Notes: generated from the letters alone by a model not told the origin. 64,000 nucleotides of DNA from Phaeosaccion multiseriatum (GCA_965112735.1 OZ218958.1:1860001-1924000), one strand, 5' to 3'. Shown: positions 3,956 to 58,700, counted from the stretch's first letter. Program-made: numbers and translations.

Positions 3956-4057
<102 letters not shown>

Positions 4058-4411: not shown

Positions 4412-5070
<659 letters not shown>

Positions 5071-5485
5071 ACCTCCTCCCCTGGTAGTACACCACTACAC
5101 GCCACCACTACTACTACTACGACACTACTACTACGACGACTACTGCTGCTGCTGCTACAACTACGACCACGACTACCTACTCGAGATGGGCGGTATGCTT
5201 ACAAAGAAAGTCGCCATCACTCTCAGTAGCCCGTCCCCACAATGTCTTGGACCCCTCAACTACTTGTTGTAGTGGCCGTGTTCCTCCCCATCTTCCTCCC
5301 TACCTCCCTCCCTCCCTCCCTCCGTCCCTCCCTCCCTCCCTCCCTTCGTCCCCTCCCTTCGTCCGTCCCTCCCTCCCTCCGTCCCTCCACCCTCTCTCCC
5401 TCCCTCCCTCCTTTCTTTCCTTCCCTTCCTCCTGTTCCGCCCACCCTCCCTTCCTTCCTCCACCTCGTTACGTAAGTTAAATACG

Positions 5486-7789
5486 TTACGAGTTCTCAAT
5501 GGCAACATTAGTAATGAGGGTGATGCGCTTCGTACTGAGGTGTGGCTGCTCGTCATAGCTCTTGTTGAGCCTTGCTTGAGCCAGCTCCCGCGCCTCAATC
5601 TTGCGCATAAACGCCAGCTGCTGCCGACTGCCGTCATGGTTTCGGCTCTCCAGCCAGGCAGGGTCTCGAGGATCGCGCGTAAAGTCGTTCCATGCACTTG
5701 TGTCAAACTTGTCGTTGTAAAAGTTGTGTCGCAGCAACCCCTTGTTCTTCATCGTCACGCAGTCGAGAACTCCCTGAGGGGGAAAGCAAGGGAGAGAGGG
5801 AGGAAGAGAAGAGTAGAGTGAGTGAGTGCGTGAGTGATGGAAAGACTCCTACAGCGTCTAAGACTCTTGTAGCGTTTGGTGGTGGAAGAGAGTCCCGTCC
5901 TCTCCCCTCCCCTCCGCTCCCCTCCCCTCCCCTCCTACTCCCCTTCCCGCACCTGGCTACCCGTGGTGCTGAACATCTTCTCCTTCTCTCGCAGCTCCGA
6001 GATGAGTTTCTTGAAGCTTCTGCTCTTGGCCACCTGCGTCATCAGTTTTCAGTTTTTCAGAAATAGTTCCCGTTCCGGAGACCTACTACATCCCAAACCC
6101 CAATCACCTCGTCCTCGGGACTAGTCTTAGTAGGCAACAGCATTGACGGCACTGAAAGGAGGGTTGGAAAGAACCAAATGCTTCGACGGCAAGGGAAGGC
6201 CAAGCAGTAGAAACTCTTGTCTGGACATTTTACCCACCCACACACCTGTGTAATGTTGTGTGCCTTGGGCTTTTGCGCAAAGCCGTGCCCATAGAGATGC
6301 AGGTCGTCATCGTGCTTGTCGAAGAAGTCCTCAGCGATAATGCGCCGCCCCACAAGCTTCTCAGCTTCGTCGAGCACTCCGTCGCCGTTACAGTCGAATC
6401 TGAGGGGGGTGGGTAGGTAAGTGGGTGGGTGGGTGGGATGGCTGAGTGGGTGAGTACACTCAGATGAGAAGAAGACATCTTGCATTCCCTCCCTCCCACC
6501 CTCCCTCACGTACCTCTTTGCCAGTGAGTAGTCTTCCTGACTGACCACCCCATCGCCGTCAATGTCATAGGAGCAGTGCGGGATGTTGCGCCTCCCCACG
6601 AGAGCGTCAAGGTCTGACTTGGTCTGGTGGGGGGGGATGTTATTGGTCTTGGGGTCCAGCAGGAGCGATCGCAGCGGCTGCGCTTTGCTCATTTTGCAGC
6701 GACTGTACCACCTCGGGTCCATTTCTTCGCTGCGATCGGTCGCTGCTGATTCTCCTGCTGCTGTTGCTGCTGGCCCCACGCCGCTGCTGGTGGCAACCTC
6801 GTCACTTACGCCATTCGCAGCTGGGCTGGAGGACGAAGGTGGTAGGCCCATGCTCTTCCTATACTGCGCCTTTCTTCGCACCTTCTCAATGTCTTTGGCC
6901 ATGCTCTCTTCCTCCAGCCTCTCTCGGACCTGTTCCACATAGAACTCGAGGTCCCCAATATCCATCTTGTTGAGACCCAATGGGAACTCATCCACGTGGG
7001 ACGCAGACGCCGATGACGATATTGTGGGTTGTGCATAGGACCCTTGCTGCTGCTGCTGCTGCTGCTGGCCGACTCTCGTCGGGCTACCGCCTCTGCTCCT
7101 GCTTCCTCCTCCCCACCCCCCTTCTCTGTTGTTCCCTTCTCTATTGCTCGCTCGAGAGCTCGGCCGTGAAGCCCGCTCGAAAAGCGGTACACCTGTGCCT
7201 CTACTACTTGAGTGTGGGGCAGTGCGTGGGGGCGTTCGATATCGGGAGGAGGGACTGCCACCCGCGCGATTGTTGCTCCTGCCACTATTGCTGTCTCCAA
7301 AGAAGGCCTCGCTGCTGCCGCTACTGCTGCTGCTGCTAAAGTGCCCCGGGGATGATCGCCCTGCGTGCTGTTGCTGGATTCCAAACTCTCTGTCGAATGT
7401 CACGGGAGATAGACCCCCCCCGGTCAAGCCGTTCAGGACGGGGGAGAGGCTGGAAGAAGACTTCCGACCTGCACTGGGACTGCCGCGACTGCACCCACGG
7501 CGAGAGATAAATGGAAGACAGGTAAGCTCGGATGCTAACAGTTGAGGAAAGAGAGCGGGGCAGCAACGGCTTCACATCTGGAAGAACCTCATCTCATAGC
7601 ACTTGTCTACGAAGTGACACTCGTGTGTGCGTCGTGCCGGCTGCTTTCACCTTTTCAGTCACGTTCCACCTAAGCCCCTCCCTCCTTGCCTCTTGCTGCT
7701 CACCTGGACGAGCCGCGGTACCCTCTCCCAATATGTATGTTGTTCGTGACGCCCACTTGATTGCGGCCTCGCCTCCCTGTTGCTGGCAT
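5486..7789 (-). CDS. EF-hand pair protein with long disordered N-terminus (about 5 exons)
   Basis: YDIDGDGVVSQEDYSLAKR|FDCNGDGVLDEAEK gives two DxDGDG loops across an intron. Downstream exons VAKSRSFKKLISELREKE and GVLDCVTM...NVAIENS* splice in phase. ATG 7789 inferred from a phase-compatible GTGAG..CAG intron. Confidence 0.7.
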
Positions 7790-25049: not shown

Positions 25050-26534
25050 ATGAAGGGGGCAATGTTTGAAGGGATGGTAGTGGTGGTGTCTCCTGTCGGC
25101 CTGACCCAAAAACGCGTAGACATCTTCTCGAAGCGGCTGGTGGAGAACGGGGCGAGCATCAAGGCCATGCCGGCCAAGTTAACGCAAAAGATCCCGGCAA
25201 TGTTTTTGAAGGGGAAGGATAAGAAGAGACAGAGGGAGGAGGGCACGGTTGGGCACGCATTAGAAGGGGTGACGCACGCCTTCTGCGAGCCAAAGGACTT
25301 TAATTTGTCAAAATTGCTGAAGGACCTGGGCATTCCCCTGCCATCGGCATCGGCGCCGGAAGAGGAGCAAGCGAGGCATGTGCGGGGAGTGTTGGGGGAG
25401 GTGAAGCTGGTCTCGACCCAGTGGCTCAGTGACTGCTTGTTGCAGAAGAAAAGGCTTCCTCTGGAGGGCCTTGAAGGATGCGGTGGAAAGGGAGACGATG
25501 GAGGAGCCAAAGAACAAGGTGGGTTGGAGGGGGGGGGGGGCTATGGAGCCATGTGGACAGACGTGCACGTTGGTGCTTTCTTGTTTTGTTTTTACTAACT
25601 CCTCCTGCTTTCGGTACAGGCGGCGGTCCTTCCTATCTGCTCAGTGCGGCGTGGTCTTGTGCCCCCCCCAAGAACAAGAAGCAAAAGATATCACCATCAC
25701 CAGCATCAGCAGCAGCAGGAGCAGGAGAAGGAGCAACCGAGAAGAAGAGTGGCGGCAGAGACGGACGTGTTGCGGATGCAGAGGGTCATGGGGCAGGGGG
25801 TGGGCTCGGGCTCTTTTTGCGCAATAGCAGCAGTGGTGGACGGGGCGCCGAAATTGTCTTTCAAGACGTGGAGAGCAACGGAGGCTGGGACCAGCCAGTA
25901 GGGGACAGAGGATATGTGCACAGGTTCTTGTCCGTGAGTAGACGCTTTTCTTCCGCGGTGGCCGCTTTTGACATGGATTGTACCGTCATTCGAACCAAGA
26001 GGTGAGTGGGTGGGTGAGTGAGTGCGCCCTACGGGGGGGGGGGGGTGTAGCGTCGGAACAGACAAGAAAGGGCGGAGGAGGGGGAAGTTATACATTTGGT
26101 GGGGCCAGGATACGAAGGCGGTCGTCAACGCCGCTCAAGTCATCTTGGGTTGACCTCGGAGAACCAGACACGCTATTGAACTACGGGGGGGATGGCCGGC
26201 ATGCTATCGCAAATAGCAGCTCAATAGCCCGTAAAGGGTCAGGTGCCTCTCCCCCTCTTCCCCGCAAACCCATGGCGTTTCATCCCTGTTCCCTACGATA
26301 CTCTGTAACTACTCCGCAGTGGGGCAAAGTTCCCTCGTGACAAGTATGACTGGAAGCTCTTTGACCCTTCCGTGCCGGCCAAGCTCAAAACCCTGTACGA
26401 CAAGGGGTATCGCATCGTGCTCGTGTCCAATCAGGTGAGTGGCAGTGCGCGCCGATGAATGGGAGAGGGTGAGAGAGGAGAGAATGAGAGGTCATGAGCC
26501 CGCTGACACAACTACAACAGCAACAACAGCAACT

Positions 26535-26573
<39 letters not shown>

Positions 26574-28529
26574 CCCCTCCTTCCCCCCCCCCCCCCCCAC
26601 ACACACACACACACGTCGGTCCCGTCGGTCGGCACAGGGCGGCATTGGCAAGGGCAAGCTACAAGCCAAAGAGATTCAGGACAAGGTGGAGGACGTCATT
26701 GCCCGCATCGGTATACCCATGGAGGCCTACCTCTGCTGTGGCGACGACTTGTATCGCAAGCCCCGCCCGGGCATATGGGACTTGCTCAAACTTGAGGCCC
26801 CACTGCTGCGGCAGGGGGAGGGGCAGAGGCAGGGGGAAGGCAATGAGGTAGGGGGGGGGGCGAAGGAGGAGGCTGAGGAGGAGGGCGGCGAGGGCAAAGA
26901 TGCTGCTGTATCACCAACTGTTGCTGCTACTGCTGCGGGTGGTGCTGCTACCCTGCTCCTACCGGAGCCCCCCAGCGCCAGTCTCTTTGTGGGCGACGCG
27001 GCGGGGAGGCCCAAGAGGGGCAGCACGTGGAAGAAAGACTTTAGCGCTGGTGACCTGAAACTGGCACTCAACCTGGGCATGCAGTTTCAGACCCCGGAAC
27101 AGGTGGGTGTACTCGTAGCGCACGGAAAGGGAGGGCGAGGGGCGGGTGGTCCGGGGAAAGATGGCCTCTCCTCTGCCCAATACGATTTTCGTGGTTCTGC
27201 CCTTCCCTCGCACCTCCTTTATCACGTGCCATCTCTCCAGTGTGTACATCTTGGCCTCTCTTTGCTCTCACCCGACATCATGTGTGTGTGTGTGTGTGTG
27301 TGACAACACAACCAAAACAGTTCTTTCTGGACAGCAGTGCTCCTCTCCACTGCAGCAGAGCCGATGCCCTCCTGGGATTCAATCCCGCCACACTGAGGAA
27401 CGCCGCCAGGGAAGAGGATGCAGCGTCATCATCCTCTCCCGCTGGGTCGGCCCCAGGGGTGGATGATGCCCAAGAAGTGCTGGTGCTGGTGGGTTCTCCG
27501 GCGGCGGGCAAGTCTTCGCTGTGTGCGTCGCGCTTCCCTCGGCATACACGTGTCAATCAGGTGGGTGGATGGGTGAAGGGGGAGGGGAGGGGGGGGGGGG
27601 GAGGGGCAGCAGGAGGGAGGGGGAGGGCATTTGTTGGGTGGTTATGCTGATTGTGATGTGATATTCGCCCCTTGCCCCACATGAGATGCCAATATCGTGT
27701 GTACCTTTCCCCTCATCCCCCTCCCCCCCTCCTCGCCTTCCTCGTTTGGGACTCTCGCTGCAACCGATCAACTTCTTGGCAACCGCTCGGCAACCGCTCG
27801 GCAACCGCTCGGCAATTGCAATGTCTTGTGTATGTGTGTGTGTTTTCTTGTCTTGGCCTGCCTTGCCGTTATCGTGTAGGATACGCTCAAAACGCGCGAG
27901 AGATGCATGAAGGCCGCCTCTGCAGCGTTGGGGAAGGGCGAGAGCGTCGTCATCGACAGCACCAACAGGGACAAGGTCACCAGGGCACACGTGAGTGAGT
28001 GAGTGGGTGAGTGAGTGAGTGAGTGGGTGAGTGGGTGGGTTGGGTGTGTCTTTTGATATTCATTTTCACCACTCGCGCTTCCCACCCGCACACAAAGGCG
28101 TACTATTATTGTCTACGTCCAATCCGCCCTGCCTACATACAGAGGCTTGTGACTTGTACAACCTCCCTCCAACCGCCCCCGTCCCCTCCCTTCCCCTCCC
28201 TTCCCTTCCCTTCCCCTCTCTGTGGAATGGAAGCACAGTGGGTGCAGCTGGCGCAGGAGAAGGGTGTTCCTGCCCGCTGTGTGCACCTTACAACCTCGTT
28301 GGAGGCCGCCAAGCACTTCAACACGTTCAGGCGCCTCGGGGGAGGAGGGGAGGAGGACAAGCGAGGCGTGCCGGACGTTGTACTCTGCAGTTATTTCAAG
28401 CACCGTGAGGCTCCCAGCACGGAGGAAGGGTTTGAGAGAGTGGAGCAGCTGGAGGTGGTGCCGGGAGCGAATGGGCACGCCTTTTTGGATGCGGAGAAGG
28501 AGCGGCTCTTCTACATGTATCTGAGGTAG
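25050..28529 (+). CDS. PNKP: Bifunctional polynucleotide kinase 3'-phosphatase with N-terminal BRCT-like domain (7 exons)
   Basis: HAD motif AAFDMDCTVIRTK, DWKLF, VLVSNQ|GGI, YRKPRPGIW, FVGDAAGR, DFSAGDLKLALNLG...TPEQ|FFL; kinase P-loop VGSPAAGKS, VNQ|DTL, VVIDSTN; C-terminal EAPSTEEGF. Confidence 0.93.
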
Positions 28530-29514
28530 CGACGTTAGAGTGCGGCTCTTTTCCACTCTCTTGTCTATCTCATAGAGGTAGAGCGAACTAGTGAGCGGCC
28601 CTTTTGCACATTCTTTTTTCTTATCTCAGCGGAGAGTGAGATGGAGAGGAGGTGGAGAGGTCGAGGAGGTAAGAGCATGGTCGTCTCTAGGAGGAGCAGC
28701 AAGAGAAGGTCACATTGAAAGGTACATCGGCTCCATCAAGCAGGAAAGGTGGCAGTGTGAAAGCGCCGTACGGACCTTTCTTGCTTGCTTGGACGGAGGC
28801 CATTCTTCCTTCAATGTGACCCCGTCATGCTGCTCTACTACTTGGGGGGATGATGACCCATCACTTGTTGCCGTCTCAGTTCCAGTAGAGAGCGCGGCTA
28901 CTCTGCATGTACGTGATGTGCATCATATAGGCACGTAGCTAGAGAGGAGGGAGAGAGAGTCTCTTGTTATACGTGTGTCTCAGGCAGAGAGGGGGGGAAA
29001 GGGCCCAATACCTCGACAAGTCAACGAGTCAGTCAGACAGGTCAGTCAGTTGACAAGTGGAGAAAGGGCGAAGGGACATGTCCAGCCGTGCATGGTCATG
29101 GTCAACCAACTGCCTGCTTCTGTTTCAGTTTCAGGTTTTTTAGACCCCTACCCAGAAACTTCGATGTGAACCAATAAAAGCGTGCTCAGGGACTTTCCGC
29201 ACGACTTCCCAGTCGATTGAAGCCCTATAAAAGCGTGTGTGTATATTTCTAACCAGTTCTGAAGCAATCCCGTAGCTCCTCCACATCTGGGATAATACCG
29301 GTAGCGGCACTCCTCTGCTCCGCCCCCTCGGGCGACAAGAGGAGCGTGCTTCACGTCGTGCTCACCGCCGCCGCCCCCCTTCCTACTCCTCCTCCTCCTC
29401 CTCTCGACTCCTCCTCCTCTCGACTCCTCCTCCTCCTCCTCCTCCTCCTCCCATGCCCTCGCTCTCTTGCGTCTTTTCAGTGGGGGCAGTAGGCTCACCC
29501 CGTGCACCTCCAGC

Positions 29515-31345
29515 TGCCCACCGACTTTCTTCTTCGTGACAAGATATTCCCGGAACAATCGCTCCGCCTCCTCCAACTGGCCCTTCTCACGCAGCAGCAC
29601 CGCCAGACCGTTAAGCCTCACCGCAACAGAGGACGACTCCTGCCCGTAGACTTTCTTATCGATGGCAAGACTTTCCCGGAACAATCGCTCCGCCTCCTTC
29701 AACTGGCCCTTCTCACGCAGCAGCACCGCCAGGTCGTTAAGCGTCGCCGCAACAGAGGACGACTCCTGCCCGTAGACTTTCTTCGAGATGGCAAGACTTT
29801 CCCGGAACAATCGCTCCGCCTCCTTCAACTGGCCCTTCTCACGCAGCAGCACCGCCAGGTCGTTAAGCGTCGCTCGCCGCAACAGAGGACGACTCCTGCC
29901 CGTAGACTTTCTTCGAGATGGCAAGACTGTCCCGGAACAATCGCTCCGCCTCCTCCAACTGGCCCTTCTCACGCAGCAGCACCGCCAGCTCGTTAAGCGT
30001 CACCGCAACAGAGGACGACTCCTGCCCGTAGACTTTCTTCGAGATGGCAAGACTTTCCCGGAACAATCGCTCCGCCTCCTCCAACTGGCCCTTCTCACGC
30101 AGCAGCACCGCCAGACCGTTAAGCGTCACCGCAACAGAGGACGATTCCTGCCCGTAGACTCTCTTCGAGATGGCAAGACTTTCCCGGAACAATCGCTCCG
30201 CCTCCTCCAACTGGCCCTTCTCACGCAGCAGCACCGCCAGCTCGTGAAGCGTCGCCGCAACAGAGGACGACTCCTGCCCGTAGACTTTGACCTTGATGGC
30301 AAGACTTTCCCGGAACAATCGCTCCGCCTCCTCCAACTGGCCCTTCTGAAGCAGCAGCACCGCCAGGTCGCTAAGCGTCGCCGCAACAGAGGACGACTCC
30401 TGCCCGTAGACTTTCTTAGAGATGGCAAGACTTTCCCGGAACAACCGCTCCGCCTCCTCAAACTGGTCCTTCTCACGCAGCAGCACCGCCAGGTCGTTAA
30501 GCGTCGCCGCAACAGAGGACGACTCCTGCCCGTAGACTTTCTTAGAGATGGCAAGACTTTCCCGGAACAATCGCTCCGCCTCCTCAAACTGGCCCTTCGT
30601 ACGCAGCAGCACCGCCAGACCGTTAAGCGTCACCGCAACAGAGGACGACTCCTGCCCGTAGACTTTGACCTTGATGGCAAGACTTTCCCGGCACAATCGC
30701 TCCGCCTCCTCCAACTGGCCCTTCTCACTCAGCAGCACGGCCAGACCGTTAAGCGTCACCGCAACAGAGGACGACTCCTGCCCGTAGACTTTGTTCAAGA
30801 TGGCAAGACTTTCCCGGAACAATCGCTCCGCCTCCTCCAACTGGCCCTTCTTACGCAGCAGCACCGCCAGGTCGTTAAGCGTCGCCGCAACAGAGGACGA
30901 CTCCTGCCCGTAGACTTTCTTAGAGATGGCAAGACTGTCCCGGAACAATCGCTCCGCCTCCTCCAACTGGCCCTTCTCACGCAGCAGCACCGCCAGACCG
31001 TTAAGCGTCACCGCAACAGAGGACGACTCCTGCCCGTAGACTTTGACCTTGATGGCAAGACTTTCCCGGAACAACCGCTCCGCCTCCTCCAACTGGCCCT
31101 TCTCACGCAGCAGCACCGCCAGACCGTCAAGCGTCGCCGCAACAGAGGACGACTCCTGCCCGTAGACTTTGACATTGATGGCAAGACATTGCCGGAACAA
31201 TCGCTCCGCCTCCTCCAACTGGCCCTTCTTATGCAGCAGCACCGCCAGACCGTGAAGCGTCGCCGCAACAGAGGACGACTCCTGCCCGTAGACTTTCTTC
31301 GAGATGGCAAGACTTTCCCGGAACAGTCGCTCCGCCTCCTCAAAC
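29515..31345 (-). repeat. Tandem 126-bp coding repeat: 14 near-identical TPR units plus one partial unit
   Basis: Unit ESSSVA(A/V)TL(N/H/D/S)(G/D/E)LAVLLxxKGQLEEAERLFRESLAIxxKVYGQ, counted from the ORF translations. Confidence 0.95.
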
Positions 31346-34334
31346 TCTTCACAGAGTCTCATCAATCTCCCCACAGCAAGCAGATCCAGTAGCCGCACTG
31401 CGGCTGGCACATCTTCGCTTGCACTCAAACATTGTCGATAGAATGTCACCTGCGCTTCACGGCTGCCGTGCAGCTCGCGAACGCCCTGCCAGTACGAAAA
31501 GAGTCTGAAGGCTCCGCCAAAACAACCAACACCTGAGGATGTCTCATACATGTTACTCCTCGTCAACTGGAGATCGGCCAAGAAGGAGGCCTGACGCTCA
31601 ACGGCCTGGGGGATGAGGGTCTTGAATCGCGCTTTCCCAATGGTGTCTCTGATGTACTCTGATTGCACATCATGGGGCCGAACGCCGTCGCTTGTCCGCT
31701 GAAGCAGGGAACGACCGACAAGCAGGTCTTCAAGCACTTTTTCGGAGGACGCCTCAGACACCCCAAAAAGGTTCATCAGCATGGTACTCGAAGCCGCGAC
31801 CCCCGTTGGAAGTACGGCAAGAAGCAGGTACCTTTCTTGCGTTTGCCGGTCAAGAGCGCGAAAGCTCAATTCCACAATGCCCTCCAGCTGCACCTCTTCA
31901 CTATCTCGCACACCGGGTAACTCCAGTAACGTGATCAACACATCCTCAACCTTCTGCCAGGCCTCGTTACTGTGTTGACGTTGAACTTCGGGGAGCGAGC
32001 CAACCATAGAAACCGCGATCGCGAGATGCCCACATTTGCCCAGCAAGCGGCGCGCGGAGGAGGGGCACTCGGTCTCGTCCTTCCATCGCCAGTCTTCCAA
32101 ATGTGCTGCTTTCCGGAGAAGCTCCATGGCCTCCTTGGGCTGAAGAACATCCACCTTAACGATCGCACTCGAAGACACGACGTCTGTTTGTCTCGTAGTG
32201 ACCAACAGTTGCATTCCAGTGCCGCGGAAGAGGTCCAGCACTTGTCCGTCCGACACGTCATCTACCACCACCAGACATCGCAAGTCGTGCTCGACAATAA
32301 ACTTCCTCACGTAGGCCACGCATCCTTCTGTGTCCTCGGGAGCGCTGAACGGGAGCTGCTTCAGGAGTTGTCCTTCGATCACGTTCGAGTGAAAGTCCTG
32401 GGCGAGGCCTTGGACCAGAGGTAGCAGCATCTCCTTGACGCACCTGCCCACCTTCACCCAGAAAAAGCCGTTGCGAAACCGTTTTTGTACTTCTAAGCGG
32501 TCGATTGCTGTGCGAGCCAAGAGCGTCTTGCCCGCTCCACCCATGCCTTCCAAACACACAACTTTCTCCTCGGACATGAGAACCTCGACCAACTGATCTT
32601 CCACCTCACGTCGCTTCACATACTCTCTTGGTAGGATTGGCATCGCCCCCCGTCCAAAGGCACGGCCCAGTTCAGGAGGAGTTGCTGTACTGCTGGTCAA
32701 GTGAGCGTCGACTTTGCGAATTAGGCTCATTGCTCCCAGCGGTTTGTCCTACGGAAGCAATGCGTAGAAACGTGTGGACAGGGAGGGTCAGCCAGGCACA
32801 TGATGAGGCCATCGTTTCCTTTGGGTAGTGGGAAGAGGGCAGTGGAGTAGAGGAGTAGTGTGCGGCTGACCGCCCATTGGCCACTAGAGCGACTCAAGCA
32901 ACTCATACCACTGGCCCGCGTCAAAAACACTCCCATAGTATGAACCTCTACAAATCCTGATACACTTCAACTCGGGGAAGGAACAAACACGTCCATTACT
33001 TAGCACAAAAATATTTCCCCGGCCGGGTCCCGAGGTCCTATTTGTTTGGGCTATAAACCCGAAACAGCGGCAGTACCACTGCCAACAGGTGCTACGTCAG
33101 GGAACAGCAACAGGTCCGTCTTGCCTCGGCTCTGGTGAAGTCCAAGCCAAGTATTTTGTGACAACAGCCTGCTCTCCCCTGCTAACTCACCAGTTGCCCG
33201 TTCACCATACTCGCAGCCTCCCTGAACAGTTGTCTGTTTGAATTAATGTACGCTCGAGTAGCCACCTTGACGACTTTCATGACGTTCGTATCATCCATGG
33301 CGTGATTGCCAGCTCCGCCGTCCGGGTTCAAGCGAATGTATCGCCCTTGTAGACTGTGGCCGTCAGCCTCGCTCTCGGCAAGCAAGTGAAGGTGGGTTTG
33401 CTCACACTGTGTGGCTGTGTCGACCAGCAGCTTCATCACGTTCGACAAAGACTGATTCTCGTGGAGCTCCACGCTTTGTAGCCCCGTGCCCATCGAGATT
33501 AGAAACTCAATCTCACGGCCACGAAATTCCTCTTCGGTAAGGAGGTGTGCCAAGACATCTCGAGTCGGGTTGTTGTGACCAACGCCGCCGTCGATGTACT
33601 CCAGTCCATCTGATGAAGCGCACGCAAGCACACAAGCAACAAGAGTAAGTACAATGGTAATGGAGGAAGAATAACAGGGAGGGAAGGAACAGCAGCAGCA
33701 GGCAGAGGAAGACGCCCGGCCGGCCGGGGCCAACTCCGTTGACGCACTCACCGATCTCGATGGGCGCGAAGAAGGAAGGCGCGGCACTCGTAGCTCTAAC
33801 AGCCTGCCATGCCGGTACGTCGGACATCCCGACAGCACGGGGGACGCGGAAGTTGGTGAAGAAGAATGGATTCGCTGTGTTTCCATTCACCCTCGACACC
33901 AACCCCAAAAGTGGGGTTCTTTCTTCTCCCTCTTGCGGCCCCACGTCCTGAAGTTTCATCTCTCTGTTCTCGGTGCTCTTCTCCAGCTGAGCTTTCACAG
34001 CGTCGACCAGGTTGCCATGGTCGTAAAGGGGCCAGCCTGTGGCACCTTTCACGAACCTCAAGACGGAATCGAAATATCCTCCTCGCAGTATTCCTTTCTC
34101 GAAGACATGGCCGCTGATCTCGTTGTAGATGTCCTCGACCTCGTTCAGTGGCACTTTCAGTGCCAACAAGAGTGCCAGGATGCCCCCAGTGCTCGTGCCT
34201 ACGATGAGGTTGAACATCTCATACGGCTCCTTGTCTTCACATTTCTCAGACAGGCTCCGCAGCATTTCAATGGTGGCCGCTCCTCGGACTCCGCCCCCAT
34301 CCAAGCACAACACGCGAAGGTGGGGGCGCGACAT
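29863..34334 (-). CDS. NLR-like protein: patatin phospholipase + NB-ARC + TPR array (exons 34334-33752, 33609-33191, 32748-29863; about 1295 aa as assembled; frameshifted extension to about 29148)
   Basis: Patatin motifs LCLDGGGVRG, GTSTG, ATSAAPSFF, IDGGVGHNNP. NB-ARC Walker A GMGGAGKT, Walker B LVVVDDV, LLVTTR, CGHLAIAV, MHD-like PHD. 42-aa TPRs. Donor CTG|GTGAGT (33190) and acceptor TTCCGTAG|GAC (32749) are both phase 0 and join NGQL|DKPLGAMSLIRK in frame. Confidence 0.88.
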
Positions 34335-34911
34335 AGCCGCCCTACCGAGTGAAAGTGGTGGTGGTGGTGTGGCTTTAAAGATGAATGCTACTCCGCGCCC
34401 AAAAAGTAATGTAGTCATCACATCACAACGTGAGTTTCAGTTTTTGACTTCAACCCTTTTCTTTTCTTTCCTACTTCCTTGGTTGCTAATCAAACAAAGG
34501 GCATTCAATTCCCTTGTCCTTGGACTGTAATGAAATAAAGGCCTCTATGTGTCTGGTGTCATGCGACACGCAGCCCCTTTCCTTTGGTCCGGTGGTCCTT
34601 GGCGTTATACTTACAGATGAATTCACTCTCCTCCACCCCCTCCCCTCGGTGACAGCTCTGTCTCCCGACTACCTCCCTCCCAATTGCTCGGTGAGGCACC
34701 ATGCCGTCTCGAACCACTCGCAAGGCTTGCCAAGCCACTGCGGCCTTGCCTTGCCTTGCCTTGCCTTGCCGTGGAAGCGACAGACAGCCTCCCCCCTTTC
34801 CCCTCACAGTTGGCAGCAGTAGCCTCCAAGGAAGGCAGCAAAAACTGCGCCAAGATCGCCTTGCTTCCCCCCTTCACTCCCTCATAGGCTCACACGTTGG
34901 TGACAGCAGGC

Positions 34912-36793
34912 TCACAGGTTGTCAAGTGCTGTTTTGAGGGCCTTGAGCAGGTCCTCGGTGGTCTCCACTCCGCAGGACACACGCACAAAGCCGTCCGTGA
35001 TGCCCACCTACAGCAGTTGGTGATACAGCAGCAGAGAGTGTGGATTAGGAGTGTGCACACTTGAAAACTTCCCCTTCCGCCCCCTACTGTCCCCAACACG
35101 CACCCACTGCCATCCCCTGCCCATCCACTGCCATCCCCTGCCCATCCCCTCACCTTCAGCCGGTCCTCCTTGAGCATATTCCCGTGCGTCATAACGGCGG
35201 GACATGTGATGATGGACTCGGTGGCCCCGAGGTTCTCGCAGAGGGTCCAGGGACGCTGCACAGAGTCCATCAGCTTGCGCCCCGCCTAACAGGAGGGGTG
35301 GGAGGGGAGGGGGGGGTAGGTGGAGGGGTGGCAGTGGATGGCAGTGGGTGGCAGTGGGTGGTAGTGGATGGCAGTGGGTGGCAGTGAGTGGATATGGCTG
35401 TTGGCAGTGGATGGACGCGAGGTTGGGTCGGCTGAGGGAGAGGAGGAAGAGGGAGGGAGGGACGGAGAGAGAGACAAGGGAAGGACACGGGAGTACAGGG
35501 ACCGACGAAGCACCTTGTCCTGCAGCTCTCCCTCTCTCTCTGTGTGTGTGCGTGCTCGGCACACTCCCTCACCTCCACCCCTCCGACCACCTCGAACCAG
35601 AGCATGCTGCCGTGAATGCCGTCGGTGTGCTGCCTGTCTGCCAACTCCTTCTGGGGGAAGGAAGCAAGGCCGGGGTATCGCACAGTCTCCACCTTGGGGT
35701 GTGTCTCCAGGAACTCGGCGAGGGCCTGGGCTGTGGCGCACTGTTGCTTGAAGCGCAGGGCCATGGTCTTGCTGTTCTGCAGAATGTAAAACGCCACCTG
35801 GGGGCTGGAGAAAGGGCATATAGGCAGGTAGGCAGGTAGGCAGACAGGTAGGCAGACAGGTAGGCAGACAGGTAGGCAGGCAGGTAGGTACATGGTTTAC
35901 GGTTGGGCAGGCAGGCATAGGCAGGAGGGAAGCCTATGGGTGGGCAGGCAGCCAGTCATACAGGCAGGCAGACGCATATGGGTAGGTACATGCAAAGACA
36001 ACATACAACGCAACGCGACACTCCTCCTCCCTCCCCCCCTCCTCTCCATCCCCTCCTCCTCCTCTCCTCCTCCTACCTGAGAATGTTCCCGTGAATGTTT
36101 TGGTAGAAGCGTATCTTGTCGTCCATCTCCTTTGTGCTGCTGATCACAGCCCCCTGTGAGTGTGTGCAGAGCCAGGCAGACCACAGCACAGCACAGCAGA
36201 GAAGAGGGGGGGGGGAGACGGGGGGGAGAGGGGGAGGAGAGGGGAGGGGAGAACCCCACAAAACGAGTGGCCAAGGAGGGAAGTGGGTGATGGGTGAGTG
36301 GGTGAGTGAGTGAGTGAGTGAGTGAGTGAGCGGGTGAGTGAGTGAGTGAGGCATGGGTGTGTCGGCACAGAGCGGAGCTGAGGCAGCGAGTGAGGGAGGG
36401 ATAGATAGCAGTGGATGGGAGTGGATGGGAGTAAGCTGATCGTTGGTGTCTATCCTATCCAGCCATCCTTCAACCTCCCTCCCTCCCTCCCTCTCCTCCC
36501 TCCCTCCCTCTCCTCCCTCCCCCCGCTCCCTCCCTCCCCTCCCCTCCCCTCCCTCACTTACTCACCCCCACAGACACGTTATGCCCATCATAAAACTTGG
36601 TAAGGCTCTGCAGCGTCATGTCACAACCCAGAGCGATGGGCTTGACCATGAGGGGCGTGGCGAAGGTCGAGTCACACACATGAGGGATACCCCGAGCCTT
36701 GGCCACCGCACTCACGGCACGGAGGTCCGTAAGCGTCAGCGTGGGGTTAGCGGGCGTCTCGGAGAAGATCAGCTGTTGTGTGTGCGCGCGTGC

Positions 36794-46484: not shown

Positions 46485-49400
46485 TCATCCCAGGTTCAAA
46501 GGTGCCTGTCCCCTCAAAAAAGGGTCAAAGCGGCACTCAAAGGCGTCCGGCTCATCCTGCCTCACATCCCAGGCCCAGGGCTCGTCGTCAGCTGCCATCT
46601 GTGCCCCTTGCTGCAGCCCCTGCTGCTTGTACCGCGGAGGTGGCAGGGTGTAGGGCAAAGGAACAAGGTCGAGAGGGAGTCCTCCCGTCTTTGGCGAGGG
46701 TTGGCAGGTGTAGCTGAGCGCCGGGAGGGGCGCGGATGGGGTGCACGAGAAGGGAGGGGAAGCAGGGCCGCAGAGGCGAGACGGTACAAAAAGTACGCTC
46801 ATCTCGTAGTGATCCACCTTCAGCTGAGGAGTGGGTGGCAGGGGGATGGCAGTGAATGGCAGTGGATGGCAGTGGATGTGGCAGGGGGGGGGGGTTGGGA
46901 GGGGGTGGGGGTTGAGAGTGAGCTCTCTACCCCTCTCTTACCATATCCCCTCTTGTTTTTATCTCTTTTATCTCTTTGTCCCTCTCTGTCCCTCCATCCC
47001 TCTAACTCGGAGACTGATCGTCTTCACTCCCGGACTGACCTGAGTCTCGTTCTTCTGCAGCTCACCGAGGGCGGACTTGGACAAGTTGTGACTGCCCATC
47101 ATCAGAAAGCCCAGTGTCGTCTCCCGTTCCTCTCCCTGTCCCTGTCCCCGCCCCTGTCCCTGCCCCGGGCCTGGCGAGGGGGTCGAGGAGAAGTACCGAC
47201 AGAACGTCTTGATGTGCGGCATGACTTGGTTGCGCTGCCATCGGGCCTCTCCCACCCAGCGGTGCAGGTATTGGCGGAGCTTGTTGATGTTGGCTAAGCA
47301 CGGAGGGGAGGAGGGAGGGAGGGAGGGAGGGAGGGAGGGAGGGAGGGAGGGAGGGCAGGCCAGATCAGGGCCAAGGGAAGACGAAAGGGAGTTGGAAAGC
47401 GAAAAGAAAACAAAAACGAAACCTAAACAACTCGACACATAGACACGAGATGCAAAACAATTCAATTGATAGAAGAAAGCGAGAGAGAGAGGGGGGGGGG
47501 GCTAGAGAGAGAGAGAGGGCAGAGAACGAAAGAGACGAAGAGAGGGGGACAGAGAGGAAGAGGGAGAGCGAGAGGAGAGAGGGACGGGGGGGGGAGAGGG
47601 GAGCCGAGAGGAAGAGGGTGAGATAGAGAGGAGGGAGTAGAGGTTTAGAGGCGGGGGCATAGGCTCAGGGTCGAGGAGATGAGGAGATAAAGACCACCGC
47701 CGCTGAAGCACAGTCGTCGTCCTACACGCATTGGTGATATGACCACTTCTCACACCTGTCGTGGCACAGATGGCGCCCCCTGAGCCCCAGCCTTGGATGG
47801 AGGTTCGGACTTGCTCCACAGTGGGCCACACTGAGGGAGGCAGAGGGGGGGGGGGGGGAGGGGGGGAGAGAGAGGGGGGGAAGAGAGAGGGGAGAGAGAG
47901 GAGGGAGAGAGAGGGGAGAGAGGGGAGGGAGAGGGGGGAGAGATGAGGGAGAGAGCGGGGAGAGACGGGGGAGAGAAAGGGGGGGGGGCTAAGGTTGGGG
48001 CAAGATGGGACGTAGTAGCAGTCAGCGACCAGAGGCCAGAGACAAGAGGGCAGGCATCCCTGCTCGCCCACTCCTCCTCCTCCTCCTCCTCCTCCTCCTC
48101 CTCCTCCTTCCTCCTCCTTTCTCCCCTTAACGCACCGAGCTGCAGAGTCTTCTTCATCAAGTCTTTGGATGGTGCAGCGTTTGACCCTCCCCTCTGGGCC
48201 ATGAAGCTCGTCCACAACTGCATGAGCCAGTTAGGACTATTGCCCGCCACGCTGCTGACTTGCAACAGCACGAAGCTCTCCCTCTGGAGGGCGGGCAGAG
48301 GAGGGGCGCTGGACAGTATGTGCCTGACTCGCATGTGTCCGAAGCTGTTGAGAAGATGAGAAGGACAATGCAAGAGAAGGGATGGGCAGGGGGAGGGGGA
48401 GGGGGAGATTCTTAGATAAGTCACTTAAGTCACCTGCGCACCAGACGTCTTGTCTTGCTGGTGGGCAGGGTTGTTGACGTACGACTTACGACATATAAAA
48501 ACAGCTCACTCAATCACTCAACCACCCACGCACTCACTCTTTCCCTCACTCACTCACTCGACTCTCGGTACCTCACTCCCCCAACCACGCACTCCCTCCC
48601 TCCCTCCCTCACTCACTCACTCACTCACTCACTCACTCACTCACTCACTCACTCACTCCCTCACTCACTAACTCACTCACTCACTCACTCACGCACTCAC
48701 TCACCGGTGGATATCTCTCCTTCCCTTGAGATGCTTGCCAGGCACGCTCGGCACGAGCACAGCGGTGGCGCGGGAGAAGTCCGCGCACCCCAGCAGCGCG
48801 GCAAAGGGGATGGCAGGGCCTTTGAGGCGAGTCAAGTAGTCTATCAGGACGGCCGAGAAGTCGTTGCGAGGAAGGGAAGAAGATGAAGATGAAGAAGAAC
48901 AAGACGAAGAAGAGGCCGCTTCTGTTTTGTTTTGTCGTCGCGTTTTTGTGGTGTTGAGCAGGGAAGAGCAGGGCAGGGCAGGGCAGCAGGGCAGCAGGGC
49001 AGGGTGGGGTAGAGCTGAGGTGAGGGCAAGGGCCCAAGGATCGAATGGACACATGATGCGCACCATACAGGGCATCTTCATCATCAACACACAAAGCTCT
49101 CCCTCCTCCTCCCTCCCCCTCCCCCATCCGGGTTGTGGCTCCCCTCCCCACTTTATCTTACTAGTTCATTGCCCTATTGTTTTCACTGCCCCCGCATGGA
49201 TTACGTACCCTTTCCTTTTCCCTTGCCCATTCCCGGCCTGTCCTCTCTGTTGCTGTTGCTGCTGCTGCTGCTGCTGCTCTTCCCCCCCTCCCCCATGTCG
49301 TCCTTCAAGGGAAAGTCTTGGTACCAGCTTCACAGGGGCATACATGGGCGGCAGCAGCAGAGAGGGGGGGGGGGGGGGCAGGGGGAGAGGGGGGAGACAG

Positions 49401-52755: not shown

Positions 52756-55700
52756 CCTCTCTCCCTCTCTCTCCCTCTCTCTGTGTGTGTGTGTCTCTCT
52801 CTCTCTCCCTCTCTCTCTCTCTAGGAGGCGAAGCAACTCAGCACCAGGAACAGGAGCCTCAGGCAGCGTCTCGCAGTCGCCACCAGAGACAGGCTCAGCA
52901 CGCTGAGAGCAGACGAGTGGGAGCAACAAGACGACCAAGATGACCTGCTGCTGCCCAACGGGGCGCCATCCGCTGCTCCTGTATCACCAACTGCTAGTGC
53001 TGCTGCTGCTAATGGTGGTGGTGCGGGTGCTGCTGATCCCTCTGGAGATAGTGCGGAGGACGCGGCAGCCGTGACGGGAGGAGGAGGTACCCCCGCGTCG
53101 TCCAAAGGGGGAGGAGAAGGAGGAGGAGGAGGAGGAGGAGGAGGAGGAGGAGGAGGAGGAGGAGGAGGAGGAGGAGGAGGAGGAGGAGGAGGAGGAGGAG
53201 GAGGAGGAGGAGGAGGAGGAGGAGGAGAGGGCACATCGGTGAAGGATGGGGGTCCGGGGAGTGGTTCGAGCGGGGCAACGGCGGATTGCTCTCTCCTCGG
53301 GGAGGAGAGTAAGTCAGTGAACGAGTTCTTACTGAGCGTGTCCTCCCTCTCGCTCACCGCCCTTTGCTCCGAGGAGGGGAAGGACAGAGCAAAAGCCCTT
53401 AAAGGGCTTGACACGGCCTTTCACGCCGCCGCCGCCGCCGCCACGCACGCACACACACACGCACCCACACACGCACCCACACACGCACCCACACAGGCAC
53501 ACGCACACGCACACACACACCCGCGTGAAGCAGTGTCGAGGTCAGGGCCTGCTGTCCACTACCCCGGGGAGGAGGTGGGCAGGGAGGCAGGGGGGGGGGA
53601 AGGGGGAGGGGGAGGGATGGTACCCTACGGTACGATGGCACCCTACGGGATGGCAGCAGACGCGACGGCAGTTCAAAGCTTGCGGGTAAGTCAGTGAATG
53701 CAGAAGTGAACACGGGTAGGCACCCTCCCTCCTTTCCTCCCCCCTCTCTCTGCTCTGTGTCATTCACTACCTCCCCTACCCTACCCTACCCTACCCTACC
53801 CTACCCTACCCTACCCTACCCTACCCTACCCTACCCTACTCTACTCCACCCCACCCTACCCTATCCTACCCTACACCACCCTACCCTACCCTACCCTACC
53901 CTACCCTACCCTACCCTACCCTACCCTACCCTACCCTATCCTACCCTACCCTACCCTACCCTACCCTACCCTACCCTACCCTACCCTATCCTACCCTACA
54001 CCACCCTACCCTACCCTACCCTACCCTACCCTACCCTACCCTACCCTACCCTACCCTACCCTACCCTACCCTACCGCCGAACAGGTCGAGCGTGACTCTC
54101 TATCTAGCGATTGTGCGCGTCTTCGTGTGGAGCTAAGGTCTGTACGACAACGCTTGGCCGAGAGAGAGTTGAGCCTCGCGGAGGAGAGGGTCGAGGGGCA
54201 TGCCGTGAGGGCACACTATGGGGCTTTGAGGGAGAGGCATGCCCGCTTGGAGGAGGAGATGGCGCGGCGCGGTGGGGGGAGGGAGAGGGAGGAGGGGGAG
54301 GAGGAGGAGGAGGAGGAGGAGGAGGAGGAGGAGGAGGAGGAGGAGGAGGAGGAGGAGGAGGAGGAGGAGGAGGAGGAGGAGGAGGAGGGGACGACAGTAG
54401 CCCCTGTTGTGGACGGGGAGGGGGAGGAGGATGCCCAAAAGGAGGAGGAGGAGGAGGAGGAGGAGGAGGAGGAGCGGGAGCAGGAGGAGCAGGAGGAGCA
54501 GGAGGAGCAGGATAAGAAGGTGGTGGTGGTGCCGAAGGAGGAGGAAGACGTCCAGGAGCAGGTGGAGGAGGAGGAGGAAGAAGAAGACGAGGAGGAGGAG
54601 AGAAGAAGAAGGAAGGCAGGCTGGCGGAGGGCATCCAAGGAAGTCACAGCTCGGCAAGGGGAGCTATCGGCCCTACGGGAGAGCATGATTGCCACGCAAC
54701 GGTTACAGTCCTTCAATGACCTAGGTGATGACGCTGTGTTGTTACCTTCCGTACCGCTACCGAGCGAGGCGGGGAGGGGAGGGGAGGAGGAGGAGGAGGA
54801 GGAGGAGGAGGAGGAGGAGGAGGAGGAGGAGGAGGAGGAGGAGGAGGAGGAGGTGGTGGTGGAGGAGGAGGAGGAGGAGGAGGAGGAGGAGGAGGAGGAG
54901 GAGGAGGAGGAGGAGGGAAAGCACGAGTCTTCGCGAGCAGTAGTAGCGGGTGAGGCAGAAGCCTTGGCGTCCAGGCTGGCAGCGGCAGAGGCGCAAGTGC
55001 TATCCCTACAACAGCAGGCCGAAGAAGAGCGAGAGACACTCTCTGCCAGCCTGGCTGAGCAGAAGCAGTCGTATGGGGAGGTGGTGGAGGAGCTGGAGGC
55101 GTTGAAGGCTGAGGCACAACGAGCGCAAGAAGAGCGGCAAGCCTTGGCGGATGCTGAGAAGGAGGCTGCGGACCAGCGGCTTGCACGAGTCCAAGAAGAG
55201 GTATGTGCGGCAGGAGAGGCCGAATACCAAGCGGCAGCGGCACAGCTTGAGAAGGATCTGGAGAAAAGGTTCGGCATCGCCCTCGAGGAGTCAAGGAAGG
55301 AGTGCGAGGCGTTGGTCATCCGAATGCAGAAAGAAGCGGCGCGTAGCTCAGCGGCGCTGGAGGGGGCAATGCGTATGTCGCGAAGCGCTCAGAGCGAGCG
55401 AGAAGAGCAGGGCCGACGAGCGATGGAAGCGGCTGAGGCAGCGGAAGCGGCGGAAGCAGAGGTCGTCAAGTTGAAGATATTGAGGGATGAGTATGCCCTG
55501 TCAGAGGCCAAGGCAAGGGATGAGAACGCTTCATTGAAGGCTATGACGAGGGAGCTCGAGAGGGAGGTGCGAGATGCCAAGGAGAGGGTGACAGCGGCAG
55601 AGGCAGCGTGTGAGCGGCTGACAAGGCAGGCAGAGGCGGGGGCAGAGGGGGGGGAGGAAGAGGAGGAGAAGGAGGAGGAGGAGGAGGAGGAGGAGGAGGA

Positions 55701-58700
55701 GGAGGAGGAGGAGGAGCACAAGAAGGATCGGGGGGCACCACAAGTCAAGCAGCACCAGCACGACAAGAAGCATCATCACACTATGATGGTGGAGCTGGAG
55801 GCCCACTACCGAGATGGCATTGAGCGTGTCAAGATGCTCGAGAAGCAGCAGCAGGAGCAGCGTGAGAAGCAACAGTTGGTGATACAGGAGCAGCAGGAGC
55901 ACATCGCCAGGCTAGAGCAACAAACCGCAGCCGCAGCCGCAGCAGCAGCAGCAGCAGTTGGTGATACAGCAGCAGCTGGCAAAAGTAAGGCTGAGCTGCA
56001 GGAGCAGCTACAGAAACTGCAGGAGCGGCATCGTGTGATAGAGGCGGCGATGCAAGCGGCGGGGCAGGAGGTAGGGCATCGCTTAGAAGAGAAGGAGAAG
56101 GAGGCAGAGGGTCTTCGTAGCTACGGGGCAGAGGTGGAGCAGAGGTTGGAGGAGAAAGAGAAGGAGGCGGAGGACCTTCGAGCTTATGCGGTGGAGCTCG
56201 AGCAACACACGAATGAACTCGAGGCGCACGTTGCGGAGTTGGAGGAGGAGCATGAGGACTTTCTGAAACAGACGCTTAGCAAGGGGGGGGGAGGAGGAGG
56301 AGGAGGGATAAGGGAAGAAGGGGAGCAGGAGGAGGAGGAGCAGGAGGAGGAGGAGGAGCAGGAGGAGGAGGAGGAGGGGGAGGAGGAGGAGGATGTAGGG
56401 GAAGGGGAGGAGGCATGGGAGGGGGAAACGGAGGAAGGTGGGGACGATGACGTGTTGGAAACGGAAGATGAGGAGGGCGGGATGGAACGGCCTCAAGAGG
56501 CAACAGAGGACATCGGCGACGGGGGAGAGGAGAAGGAGGAGAAGGGGGAGGGGGGGGGGGGGGGGGTACGGCACGTGTCAGAGATTGACTTCGGGGCAGC
56601 GTGTGACGGAGGAGGAGGAGGAGGAGGAGGAGGAGGAGGAGGAGGAGGAGGAGAGGAGAGTGAAGGTGGTGACAACGAGCCCAGGGGCTCTCTTCATCTC
56701 CAAGCCATGGCGGAGGCGTCCCTGATGAAAGAGCTGGAGCTCGATACGGAGGACCACCAACATGCGCAGGTCACAGATGACGAGCACAAGGCGGCGGCCG
56801 CGGACCTTTCCCGGACCCTTCTGAAGACCCAAGCGCAGTTGGGAGACGCTTTGATGGAACGGGTGGCTTTGTTGGAGCAAGTACGCCAGTTGGAGAAGGA
56901 GAATCACCAACAGGCGGTGGGGCTCGCAGGCAAGGAGGAGGAGCGGGCCGGGCTGAGGGCGCGTCTGACTCTGTTGGAACGTGACCATGAGCTGCAGCTG
57001 GAGCAGTTGGTGGTACAGCAAACACAGCACGGGGTCGAAGAAGTCGAAACGACCGAGACAGATTCAAAGGCATTGCGAGTAGACAGTAGCGGCAAGGAGA
57101 AGGAGAAGCAGGCGCTATACGCTGAGCGCCTGGCGTCGCAAGCAGCCCGGTCAAAGATGGAGATGGAAGTGGCGCGCTTGGAGGAGGAGTTGCGGAAGGC
57201 GCAGGAGGAGCAATTGGTAGTACAGCAGGAGGAGGCGTTGCGCGCAGAGGAGCAGTTGGTAATACAGGAACAGAAGCAGCTGGTGGTACAGCAGCAGGAG
57301 GAGTTGGTGATGCAGCAGCGGGAGCAGTTGATGATGCAGCAGCAGCTCCTCGAGTCCAAGGAGCAGGAGGTGAAGGAGAAGGAGGCAGAGAGGGTCGAGT
57401 TGGAGGGGCGGGAGTTGGTGATACAGCAGCGGGAGGAGGCACTGAAGGAGAGACTGGAGGGGGCTGAATCACAACTGGCTCAGGCTGAATCACAGCTGGC
57501 TCAGGCAGTGAAGGAGGTGGGTGCGAGCGTGGAGGAGAGCGGGCGCCTGGGGGCAGCGTTGGAGGAAGCAGAAGGCCGCATCGATGGGTTACGGAGCACG
57601 CTGGAAGCTTTGCAGGGTAGAGCAAGGGAGGCAGAGGCAGAGGTGGAGGAAGCGCGAGACCGAGAGACCGCCTTGAAAGCAGAGATGAAGGAGATGCAAC
57701 AGATACGACAACAGCAAGAGGATCAAGAAGACTTGCTTCGGTCAGAACTCGAGACTATGCAAGTAGAAGGAGGAGAGAGAGAGCAGGCACTGGCGGAGAG
57801 GCTACAGATCGTGCAATCACAATTGGCGGTGGCAGAGGCCGAGTACGAAGCCGTAGCTGCGCAGCTTGAGAAGACTCTAGAGCAGAGGGAGGGGACGTTA
57901 GAGGAGTCGAGAAAGGAGTGCGAGGCTTTGTCCATCCGAATGCAGGAGGAGGTGGCGCGTAGCTCAGCGCTGGAGGAGCAGATACGGGTGTTTGAGGAGA
58001 AGCACGAGGCTTCGCGAGCAGTAGTGGCTGGCGAGGCAGAAGCCCTGGCATCCAAACTGGCAGCGGCAGAGGCCCAAGTGCTCTCCGCCGAGGCAAGGCA
58101 AGGGGAACACGCCAGTGTACATGCACGAGTGGTTGCAGAGAAGGATGCCACTGCATCGAGGCTCCAGGAAGCGGGAGCGCGGTTGGCAGCACTCGAGGCG
58201 CAACAGGAACAGAGAGAGGCTCGCTGGGCACTGGAGCGTACGAGCACGGCAGAGACTATCGGTGGACTGCAAGACCAACTGGATACAGCTCTGGCGGAGA
58301 GGGCATCGACGTCTACACACGCAGAGGAGAGTGTGAGGGAGATGGAGGAGAGGTGTGCAGAGAGACTTAACGCCATACGGAGAGACATGGAAGCCCCGTT
58401 CGAGGCCGTAGAGAAGGAGAGGGACGCAATGGCGTTGAAACTTGCACAAGCAGAGGCGTTGGTGATACAGATGGAACAAGACCGCGCTGAAAAGGAGCGT
58501 GAGTCACTCTCCGTCGCTCTGCAAGAGAAGGCAGAGATGGTGGCCATTGTAAAGGAGGCAGGGGCAGCTGCCGAGGCGTCAAGGAAGGAGTGCGAGACCC
58601 TGACCTTCCGACTGCAGGAGGAAACACGAGTGGGAAGTGAGAAGGAGAGCAACGCAGTGCGTGAGAGAGAGGCAATGGCGTCAAAGCTCGAGGAAGCAGA

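Follow-up and report, generated by a model that had tools for sequence, protein, structure and literature searches.

We analyzed a 64,000-nucleotide stretch of the Phaeosaccion multiseriatum genome (GCA_965112735.1 OZ218958.1:1860001-1924000; here called the window, with positions counted from its first letter) and identified a minus-strand locus that holds patatin, NB-ARC, and tetratricopeptide repeat (TPR) parts. We favor, with a probability of roughly 0.6, the reading that this locus is one three-exon gene for a receptor that resembles the NOD-like receptors (NLRs) and belongs to the signal transduction ATPases with numerous domains (STAND). From N to C terminus, the predicted protein would consist of a CapV-like patatin phospholipase A, an NB-ARC ATPase switch, and an array of near-identical TPR units of 42 residues each. 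The window comes from contig 9 of an assembly of 67 Mb in 22 contigs and consists of eukaryotic nuclear DNA with about 58% GC.

Four minus-strand reading frames within 34421-29148 contain the patatin, NB-ARC, and TPR parts, which follow one another in that order on the same strand and are connected by in-frame consensus splice signals. The proposed gene model has exons at 34334-33752, 33609-33191, and 32748-29863 and would encode 334 + 961 = 1295 codons as assembled. An earlier reading made from the DNA alone (the sequence-only reading) had named all three domains, and Pfam confirms each of them. It had also described patatin and NB-ARC-TPR as lying in separate frames, but it did not mention the phase-1 intron (33751-33610) that interrupts the patatin part. 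All similarity searches reported here used single exons as the query, not the joined model. The features of the locus are as follows.

33752-34334, minus strand: exon 1, N-terminal part of patatin with the oxyanion loop and the nucleophile elbow
33610-33751, minus strand: intron 1, 142 nucleotides, phase 1, G/GTGAGT...CATCAG/AT, supported by homology
33191-33609, minus strand: exon 2, C-terminal part of patatin with the catalytic Asp motif DGG
32749-33190, minus strand: candidate intron 2, 442 nucleotides, phase 0, CTG/GTGAGT...TTCCGTAG/GAC
31441-32748, minus strand: first part of exon 3, a linker of about 35 amino acids (internal ATG at 32730) and then NB-ARC with its nucleotide-binding, helical, and winged-helix domains (NBD-HD1-WHD)
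29866-31440, minus strand: second part of exon 3, the in-frame TPR array, followed by TAA at 29865-29863
29870-29877, minus strand: 4-nucleotide tandem duplication GCGA GCGA, which shifts the frame to the TAA at 29865-29863
29148-29862, minus strand: out-of-frame remainder, about three more TPR units and a low-complexity tail, 3' untranslated as assembled

A predicted lipase encoded by exons 1 and 2

The Pfam Patatin profile (PF01734) matched the open reading frame (ORF) at 33513-34421 on the minus strand over profile positions 1 to 172 of 191 (E = 1.5e-23; 84.4 bits versus a cut-off of 27.7), and profile positions 138 to 190, with the DGG end, fell in the minus-strand ORF at 33182-33886 that contains exon 2. 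Exon 1 also matched PDLC00758, the PADLOC profile for phospholipases of the type found in cyclic-oligonucleotide-based antiphage signaling systems (CBASS), over positions 4 to 171 of 331 (E = 3.2e-34), and exon 2 covered positions 177 to 308. Because the two exons together span this profile, the lipase module is complete. The NCBIfam CBASS_lipase profile matched exon 1 with an E value of 1.5e-23 and 83.5 bits, below its equivalog cut-off of 200. The best solved-structure relative of exon 1 was CapV (PDB 8zr9, E = 6e-12), and the patatin part matched iPLA2-beta as well (E = 1.5e-10). The look-alikes found in the ESM Atlas were only generic TPR clusters and bacterial patatin clusters, in agreement with the bacterial profile and structure matches of the lipase.

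The patatin motifs are intact, as the sequence-only reading had described them, with DGGGVRG at 34301-34281, GTSTG at 34199-34185, and DGG within 33592-33566. In an alignment of the module with its homologues (alignment A1), D12 to G15, R17, G18, G46, G50, and G51 are invariant, T47 to T49, which include the nucleophile Ser48, are nearly invariant, and the DGG motif is also present in the homologues. With the profile matches, the Ser-Asp dyad, and the Gly-rich oxyanion loop, exons 1 and 2 are predicted to encode a patatin-like phospholipase with lipid acyl-hydrolase activity.

Removal of intron 1 restores the reading ...FFAPIEI-D-GLEYIDGGVGHNNP..., and 12 homologues in alignment A1 read through that junction. 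Since they continue uninterrupted across it, we regard the intron 1 splice as validated. We preferred the ATG at 34334 as the start codon over an upstream in-frame ATG at 34418, which is the less likely start because the 84 nucleotides between them (34418-34335) do not have a coding-type GC periodicity.

Splice signals between the patatin and NB-ARC frames

We consider it quite likely that the patatin and NB-ARC-TPR frames are fused through an intron at 33190-32749. The sequence-only reading had proposed this intron, and phase-0 signals do lie in frame at exactly these positions; the splice itself was seen in no transcript. The donor (CTG/GTGAGT at 33190) is a perfect hexamer placed two codons before the patatin frame stops. 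The acceptor (TTCCGTAG/GAC, ending at 32749) is preceded by a 75% pyrimidine tract, and its AG belongs to the TAG at which the NB-ARC frame opens. Exon 2 ends with a complete codon and exon 3 begins with one, which keeps the frame across the join. The 442 nucleotides between them contain 3 to 8 stops in every frame and a flat GC content by codon position (0.52/0.51/0.57), whereas exons 1, 2, and 3 are coding-like (about 0.6/0.4/0.65-0.74). We rejected a repeat or transposon origin of this spacer, whose sequence is unique in the genome.

The donor hexamer dominates among the donor-like sites of the window, where GTGAGT occurs 168 times against about 29 expected, an approximately 6-fold excess, and GTAAGT occurs 21 times. 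Short tandem runs of the GTGA/GTGAGT type at 48684-48704 and, on the minus strand, 60439-60447 add to this excess. The gene upstream, which encodes an enzyme of Cys/Met metabolism, has a homology-supported intron of 146 nucleotides at 35153-35008 (AAG/GTGAGG...CTGTAG/G) with the same TAG-acceptor layout as candidate intron 2. By rough arithmetic of our own from the GTGAGT density, a donor and a TAG acceptor in this configuration between unrelated genes would be improbable by chance (<1%). A genome-wide search of the 67 Mb found 5 loci for NB-ARC and about 10 for patatin, and with so few loci of either kind a head-to-tail patatin/NB-ARC adjacency on the same strand is unlikely to arise by chance.

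An NB-ARC switch from a five-gene family

The Pfam NB-ARC profile (PF00931) matched the minus-strand ORF at 29863-32730 (E = 1.3e-21; 77.4 bits versus a cut-off of 23.5). Walker A (GMGGAGKT, 32547-32524), Walker B (LVVVDDV, 32274-32254), and the sensor-1 TTR within LLVTTR (32208-32191) can be read directly. The GLPL-like motif at 32034-32011 is degenerate (CGHLAIAV, with CGRLALAL in a brown-algal homologue), and the MHD position reads PHD (within 31680-31669), aligned to VHD of that homologue. The intact Walker motifs and the PHD reading agree with the earlier description. Residues 33 to 366 of the exon 3 part matched APAF-1 residues 116 to 445 (E = 3.5e-13 over 334 residues), and NRC4, Sr35, and ZAR1 matched too. 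Profile, NBD-HD1-WHD homology, and motifs together point to a STAND ATPase of the NB-ARC type.

In the database searches, the NB-ARC part came closest to an NB-ARC protein of the brown alga Sphacelaria rigidula (29% identical, E = 8e-28), which has 213 amino acids ahead of the shared PRxYVxR start. The APAF-1 alignment begins at residue 116 of that protein, just past its CARD. The paralogue count that the sequence-only reading had proposed gave 5 NB-ARC loci in the genome, with no patatin head seen in the other four. These four NB-ARC-TPR paralogues are 33 to 35% identical to the window gene, with the alignment starting at about residue 35 of exon 3, and in at least three of them the NB-ARC ORF also encodes an unrelated module of about 300 amino acids at the N terminus; the stretch examined for the fourth (L004) begins about 100 residues ahead of the P-loop. 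By these alignments, the NB-ARC-TPR chassis is native to this alga, and the window gene belongs to a five-gene family. Because at least three of the four paralogues, the Sphacelaria protein, and APAF-1 all have an N-terminal module, a module is also to be expected ahead of the NB-ARC domain in the window. The intron positions of the paralogues are not usable as a test of the splice, since at least three of the four carry module and NB-ARC in one ORF.

The paralogues lie on contig 12 as two tandem pairs, at 1995052-2007612 and 2168993-2178929. In at least three of them, the N-terminal module of about 300 amino acids is shared and is followed by short ETKQIVTESKD-like repeats and then by NB-ARC.

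A homogenized TPR array with a frameshift

The same ORF at 29863-32730 matched the Pfam profiles TPR_12 (E = 6e-132) and TPR_10 (E = 9e-126), and Tandem Repeats Finder reported a period of 126 nucleotides with 14.3 copies and 92% matches. The in-frame array consists of one degenerate unit, 11 near-identical 42-amino-acid units, and a 12th unit broken off after four codons. The sequence-only reading had extended the gene to 29148. The frame instead ends at the TAA at 29865-29863, where a tandem duplication of GCGA at 29877-29870 shifts it and leaves the last three TPR units out of frame. The affected unit reads GCGGCGAGCGACGCTT, with a unit spacing of 130 instead of 126; at the same spot, the other anchored units, 12 in number, have GCGGCGACGCTT or GCGGTGA(C/G)GCTT, and none has the extra 4 nucleotides. 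The minus-strand ORF at 29148-29972, in the other frame, still matched TPR_12 (E = 1.3e-30), and within 29862-29148 there are about three further TPR units, of which the last is degenerate, and then a low-complexity tail rich in Glu, Arg, and Gly that runs to the stop of that ORF. A (TCC)n/(GAG)n repeat lies at 29381-29451.

Of about 15 sensor units, the duplication thus leaves about 12 in the protein. It is probably real, since a 4-nucleotide tandem duplication is atypical of long-read errors. The units beyond the shift have remained almost identical to those in frame, and the frameshift is therefore recent or polymorphic, if it is not an assembly error. The gene is not necessarily disabled by it, and the number of repeats in such receptors varies naturally (PMC4986451).

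Over 13 units, codons that differ from the commonest codon did so with about 55 nonsynonymous and 4 synonymous changes. A scripted nonsynonymous count of 62 included an artifact at codon 30, where a column-wise consensus produced a false stop, and we used the value of about 55. The differences are focused on unit positions 1, 4, 5, 11, 12, 30, and 31. Homogenized repeats with few hypervariable sites are how the repeat domains of fungal NLRs have been described (PMC4986451).

Relatives and origin of the two halves

A HMMER search with exon 1 returned 370 proteins at E ≤ 1e-10, with at most about 46% identity. Pfam scans of 17 of these proteins found only stand-alone patatins or fusions with LRR/ARM, kinase, or dynamin domains. 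The nearest kin of the patatin half and of the NB-ARC half are different in these searches, and neither kin is fused. Nothing in them points to shared ancestry with the fungal genes of this layout, and the relationships seen favor an independent assembly. The fusion looks like lineage-specific exon shuffling, in which a stand-alone-type patatin was placed through a phase-0 intron ahead of the alga's own NB-ARC-TPR chassis. This reading is simpler than vertical descent or horizontal acquisition of a gene of the fungal kind: the domain boundary falls on the candidate phase-0 intron, and the halves have separate, unfused kin.

The nearest patatin homologue on a long contig (P0014; Logan SRR6869053, ENA ERZ27264732 contigs) is a stand-alone protein of 421 amino acids and 37% identity. 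Its contig is gene-dense, has about 50% GC, and carries genes for ClpB, a PPR protein, and transporters as neighbors; it is probably from a small eukaryotic alga.

Alternative readings of the locus

A number of observations weigh against a single fused gene. No transcript or protein record of the gene that would prove the splice was found in the searched collections. Word searches with the NB-ARC part and with exon 2, in protein collections that cover transcriptome assemblies too, returned neither the protein itself nor a near-identical one, and a metagenome scan with exon 1 gave no match. In a local phmmer search that included a positive control, none of the 150 nearest patatin representatives had NB-ARC or TPR. 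Of the NB-ARC relatives listed in the word searches, 14 in number, none had patatin. The two nearest patatins on long contigs, which look eukaryotic, had no NB-ARC or TPR within the stretch examined, at most 8 kb on each side. The TPR frameshift could also mark the onset of decay.

The locus might instead be two separate adjacent genes, one for a stand-alone patatin of about 337 amino acids that ends ...GQLVS at 33182 and one for an NB-ARC-TPR protein that starts at the ATG at 32730 and has no effector domain; the two products might cooperate in trans as a cassette. We judge this unlikely. The features that suggest it are an ATG within exon 3 that is in good context, with A at -3 and only 18 nucleotides past the putative acceptor, and the end of exon 2, which lies within a few residues of the C terminus of the stand-alone 340-amino-acid homologues in alignment A1. 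The patatin frame alone would therefore be a stand-alone patatin of normal length, stopping where its homologues stop, and its nearest relatives do stand alone. The gap between the frames, about 450 nucleotides, resembles the tandem intergenic spacer of about 577 nucleotides to the upstream gene, and the 442-nucleotide candidate intron is three times as long as both validated introns nearby (142 and 146 nucleotides). These features, together with the missing spliced transcript, have to be set against a donor at the end of one ORF and a TAG acceptor of the same phase where the next ORF opens, a configuration that is improbable without splicing by our rough estimate. An NB-ARC-TPR protein with only about 33 residues ahead of its NBD would also have no output domain, whereas a module fills that place in the brown-algal relative, in APAF-1, and in at least three of the four paralogues.

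It is improbable, in our view, that the gene is decaying or nonfunctional and makes no working receptor. The 4-nucleotide duplication shortens the sensor array, and the lack of a self match, transcriptome assemblies included, would fit a silent gene. However, about 1295 codons are open save for one 3'-terminal lesion, all catalytic and nucleotide-binding motifs are intact, and coding periodicity is kept. The near identity of the out-of-frame units marks the lesion as very recent, polymorphic, or an assembly error, and a change in repeat number is within the natural variation of such receptors. Moreover, the protein collections hold no searched frame of this locus, so that the blank result says little about expression.

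That the fused protein is real but serves as a regulated lipase for lipid signaling or membrane remodeling, with NB-ARC-TPR as a scaffold or switch and no immune or death function, is very improbable to us: patatin-family enzymes such as iPLA2-beta do have housekeeping and signaling roles, bacterial NB-ARC-TPR proteins do regulate transcription or biosynthesis (AfsR and HaaT-like matches), and the gene is single-copy among housekeeping neighbors, but near-identical repeats with focused nonsynonymous variation are a hallmark of recognition receptors, the top scores of the patatin module are to antiphage CBASS lipase profiles, and the only characterized proteins of this architecture execute cell death (PMC12881547).

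Proposed mechanism and significance

Under the favored model of a single patatin-NB-ARC-TPR gene, we infer from characterized systems that the algal protein may act as a receptor and executioner; an immune or allorecognition role is suggested by analogy only. By analogy with PLP-1/HET-Z, APAF-1, and plant NLRs, the TPR array and bound ADP would hold the resting protein monomeric with the lipase off. A ligand, either derived from a pathogen or an altered self component, would bind the variable TPR surface and allow nucleotide exchange and oligomerization through NB-ARC. Oligomerization would cluster and activate the patatin heads, which would then hydrolyze membrane phospholipids, and the cell would be killed or disabled.

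We see about an even chance that a photosynthetic stramenopile has assembled a working, phospholipase-armed NLR independently of fungi, from a CapV-like patatin exon pair joined through a phase-0 intron to a native NB-ARC-TPR chassis. If so, the design in which an NLR switch drives a patatin executioner would be convergent in fungi and an alga, would extend beyond fungi, and would parallel bacterial defense systems that use this lipase as an effector with separate activation. Microalgae would also gain a genetically tractable candidate for programmed cell death triggered by viruses or other pathogens. Few receptors or executioners have been identified for regulated cell death in microalgae, as in viral infection and bloom collapse, and a single-copy gene that couples sensor, switch, and lytic enzyme would be a directly testable candidate. 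The family would further illustrate modular N-terminal swapping on a small scale, with five NB-ARC-TPR genes and at least two unrelated kinds of N-terminal module. The principle is not new, because fungal work has already established both the architecture and its logic.

Neighboring genes and other features of the window

Upstream, at 34912-35893 on the minus strand, lies the multiexon gene for a pyridoxal phosphate-dependent enzyme of Cys/Met metabolism, two of whose ORFs match Pfam PF01053. The gene has its last intron at 35153-35008, and its stop near 34912 leaves about 577 nucleotides to the patatin ATG. The convergent downstream neighbor at 26494-28529 on the plus strand encodes a polynucleotide kinase 3'-phosphatase (PNK3P; PF08645, E = 4.6e-23). 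A coding-looking ORF at 28023-28529 (plus) is probably the last exon of that gene and bounds the 3' end of the receptor gene.

Elsewhere in the window, a 2014-amino-acid open frame (54127-60171) lies within 54001-60200 on the plus strand, where the GC skew and the AT skew are each about +0.4 over 6 kb; it is likely to be very purine-rich repetitive coding sequence. The 2 kb at 4001-6000 have a GC skew of -0.53 and an AT skew of -0.25.

Comparison with known systems

Fungal cell-death NLRs of the PLP-1/HET-Z type have the order patatin, NB-ARC, TPR (PMC12881547, PMC4986451), as the sequence-only reading had noted, and this order is shared by Neurospora crassa PLP-1, Podospora anserina HET-Z/PaPLP1, Cryphonectria vic2, and Botrytis Bcvic1. 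In fungi, patatin nearly always occurs together with NB-ARC, and TPR is the preferred domain after NB-ARC (PMC4986451). Neurospora PLP-1 and Podospora HET-Z kill the cell when the TPR side meets an incompatible SEC-9; PLP-1 self-associates, and death requires its patatin activity and its P-loop (PMC12881547). The catalytic Ser/Asp and the P-loop, both of them needed for PLP-1 death, are intact in the algal gene. Also like the fungal patatin NLRs, which number 1 to 2 per species (PMC4986451), the algal gene is low in copy number (single-copy), and its repeats are internally well conserved with few variable positions.

The algal gene differs from PLP-1/HET-Z in that its host is a stramenopile, its patatin and NB-ARC would lie in separate exons across a phase-0 intron, its NB-ARC groups with its own paralogues and a brown-algal protein, and its nearest patatins stand alone. 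A SNARE of the SEC-9/SNAP-25 type had no match in the five flanking reading frames scanned, with the other flanking ORFs left out, and because no SNARE was seen in the scanned flanks the fungal guard/partner arrangement is not reproduced here. A linked SEC-9 partner defines the fungal allorecognition system, not the architecture. Our full-text literature searches found the patatin-NB-ARC-TPR combination described in fungi only and NB-ARC-TPR in brown algae without patatin, and they returned no paper on patatin, NLRs, and algae in this sense.

Bacterial STAND or NLR-like proteins with lipase heads have also been catalogued. The CapV/CBASS phospholipases are the best profile and solved-structure matches to the patatin module, with the same motifs and with profile positions 4 to 308 of 331 covered. 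The algal gene differs in being eukaryotic with introns and in scoring far below the NCBIfam equivalog level (83.5 versus 200 bits). Its activation is proposed to run through the fused NB-ARC switch, whereas CapV is activated by a cyclic-nucleotide (cGAMP) signal; the flanking reading frames scanned gave no CD-NTase match, and we do not class the gene as a CapV effector.

Brown algae have NB-ARC-TPR families, in agreement with the sequence-only reading, and the report on them does not mention patatin (PMC3341825). The families of Ectocarpus (Zambounis et al. 2012) and of the alga's own genome have the same chassis and repetitive TPR sensors as the window gene, but a patatin head was neither reported in the former nor seen in the latter, where the paralogues carry the unrelated module of about 300 amino acids. 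In Ectocarpus each TPR unit is a shuffled exon of its own, whereas here one exon holds the entire array. APAF-1 and the plant coiled-coil NLRs (NRC4, Sr35, ZAR1) have a homologous NBD-HD1-WHD and the same logic of activation driven by oligomerization. Their sensors are WD40 or LRR domains where the algal gene has TPR, and their N termini are an adaptor (the CARD of APAF-1) or a pore-forming coiled coil, whereas the N terminus of the algal protein is predicted to be an enzyme.

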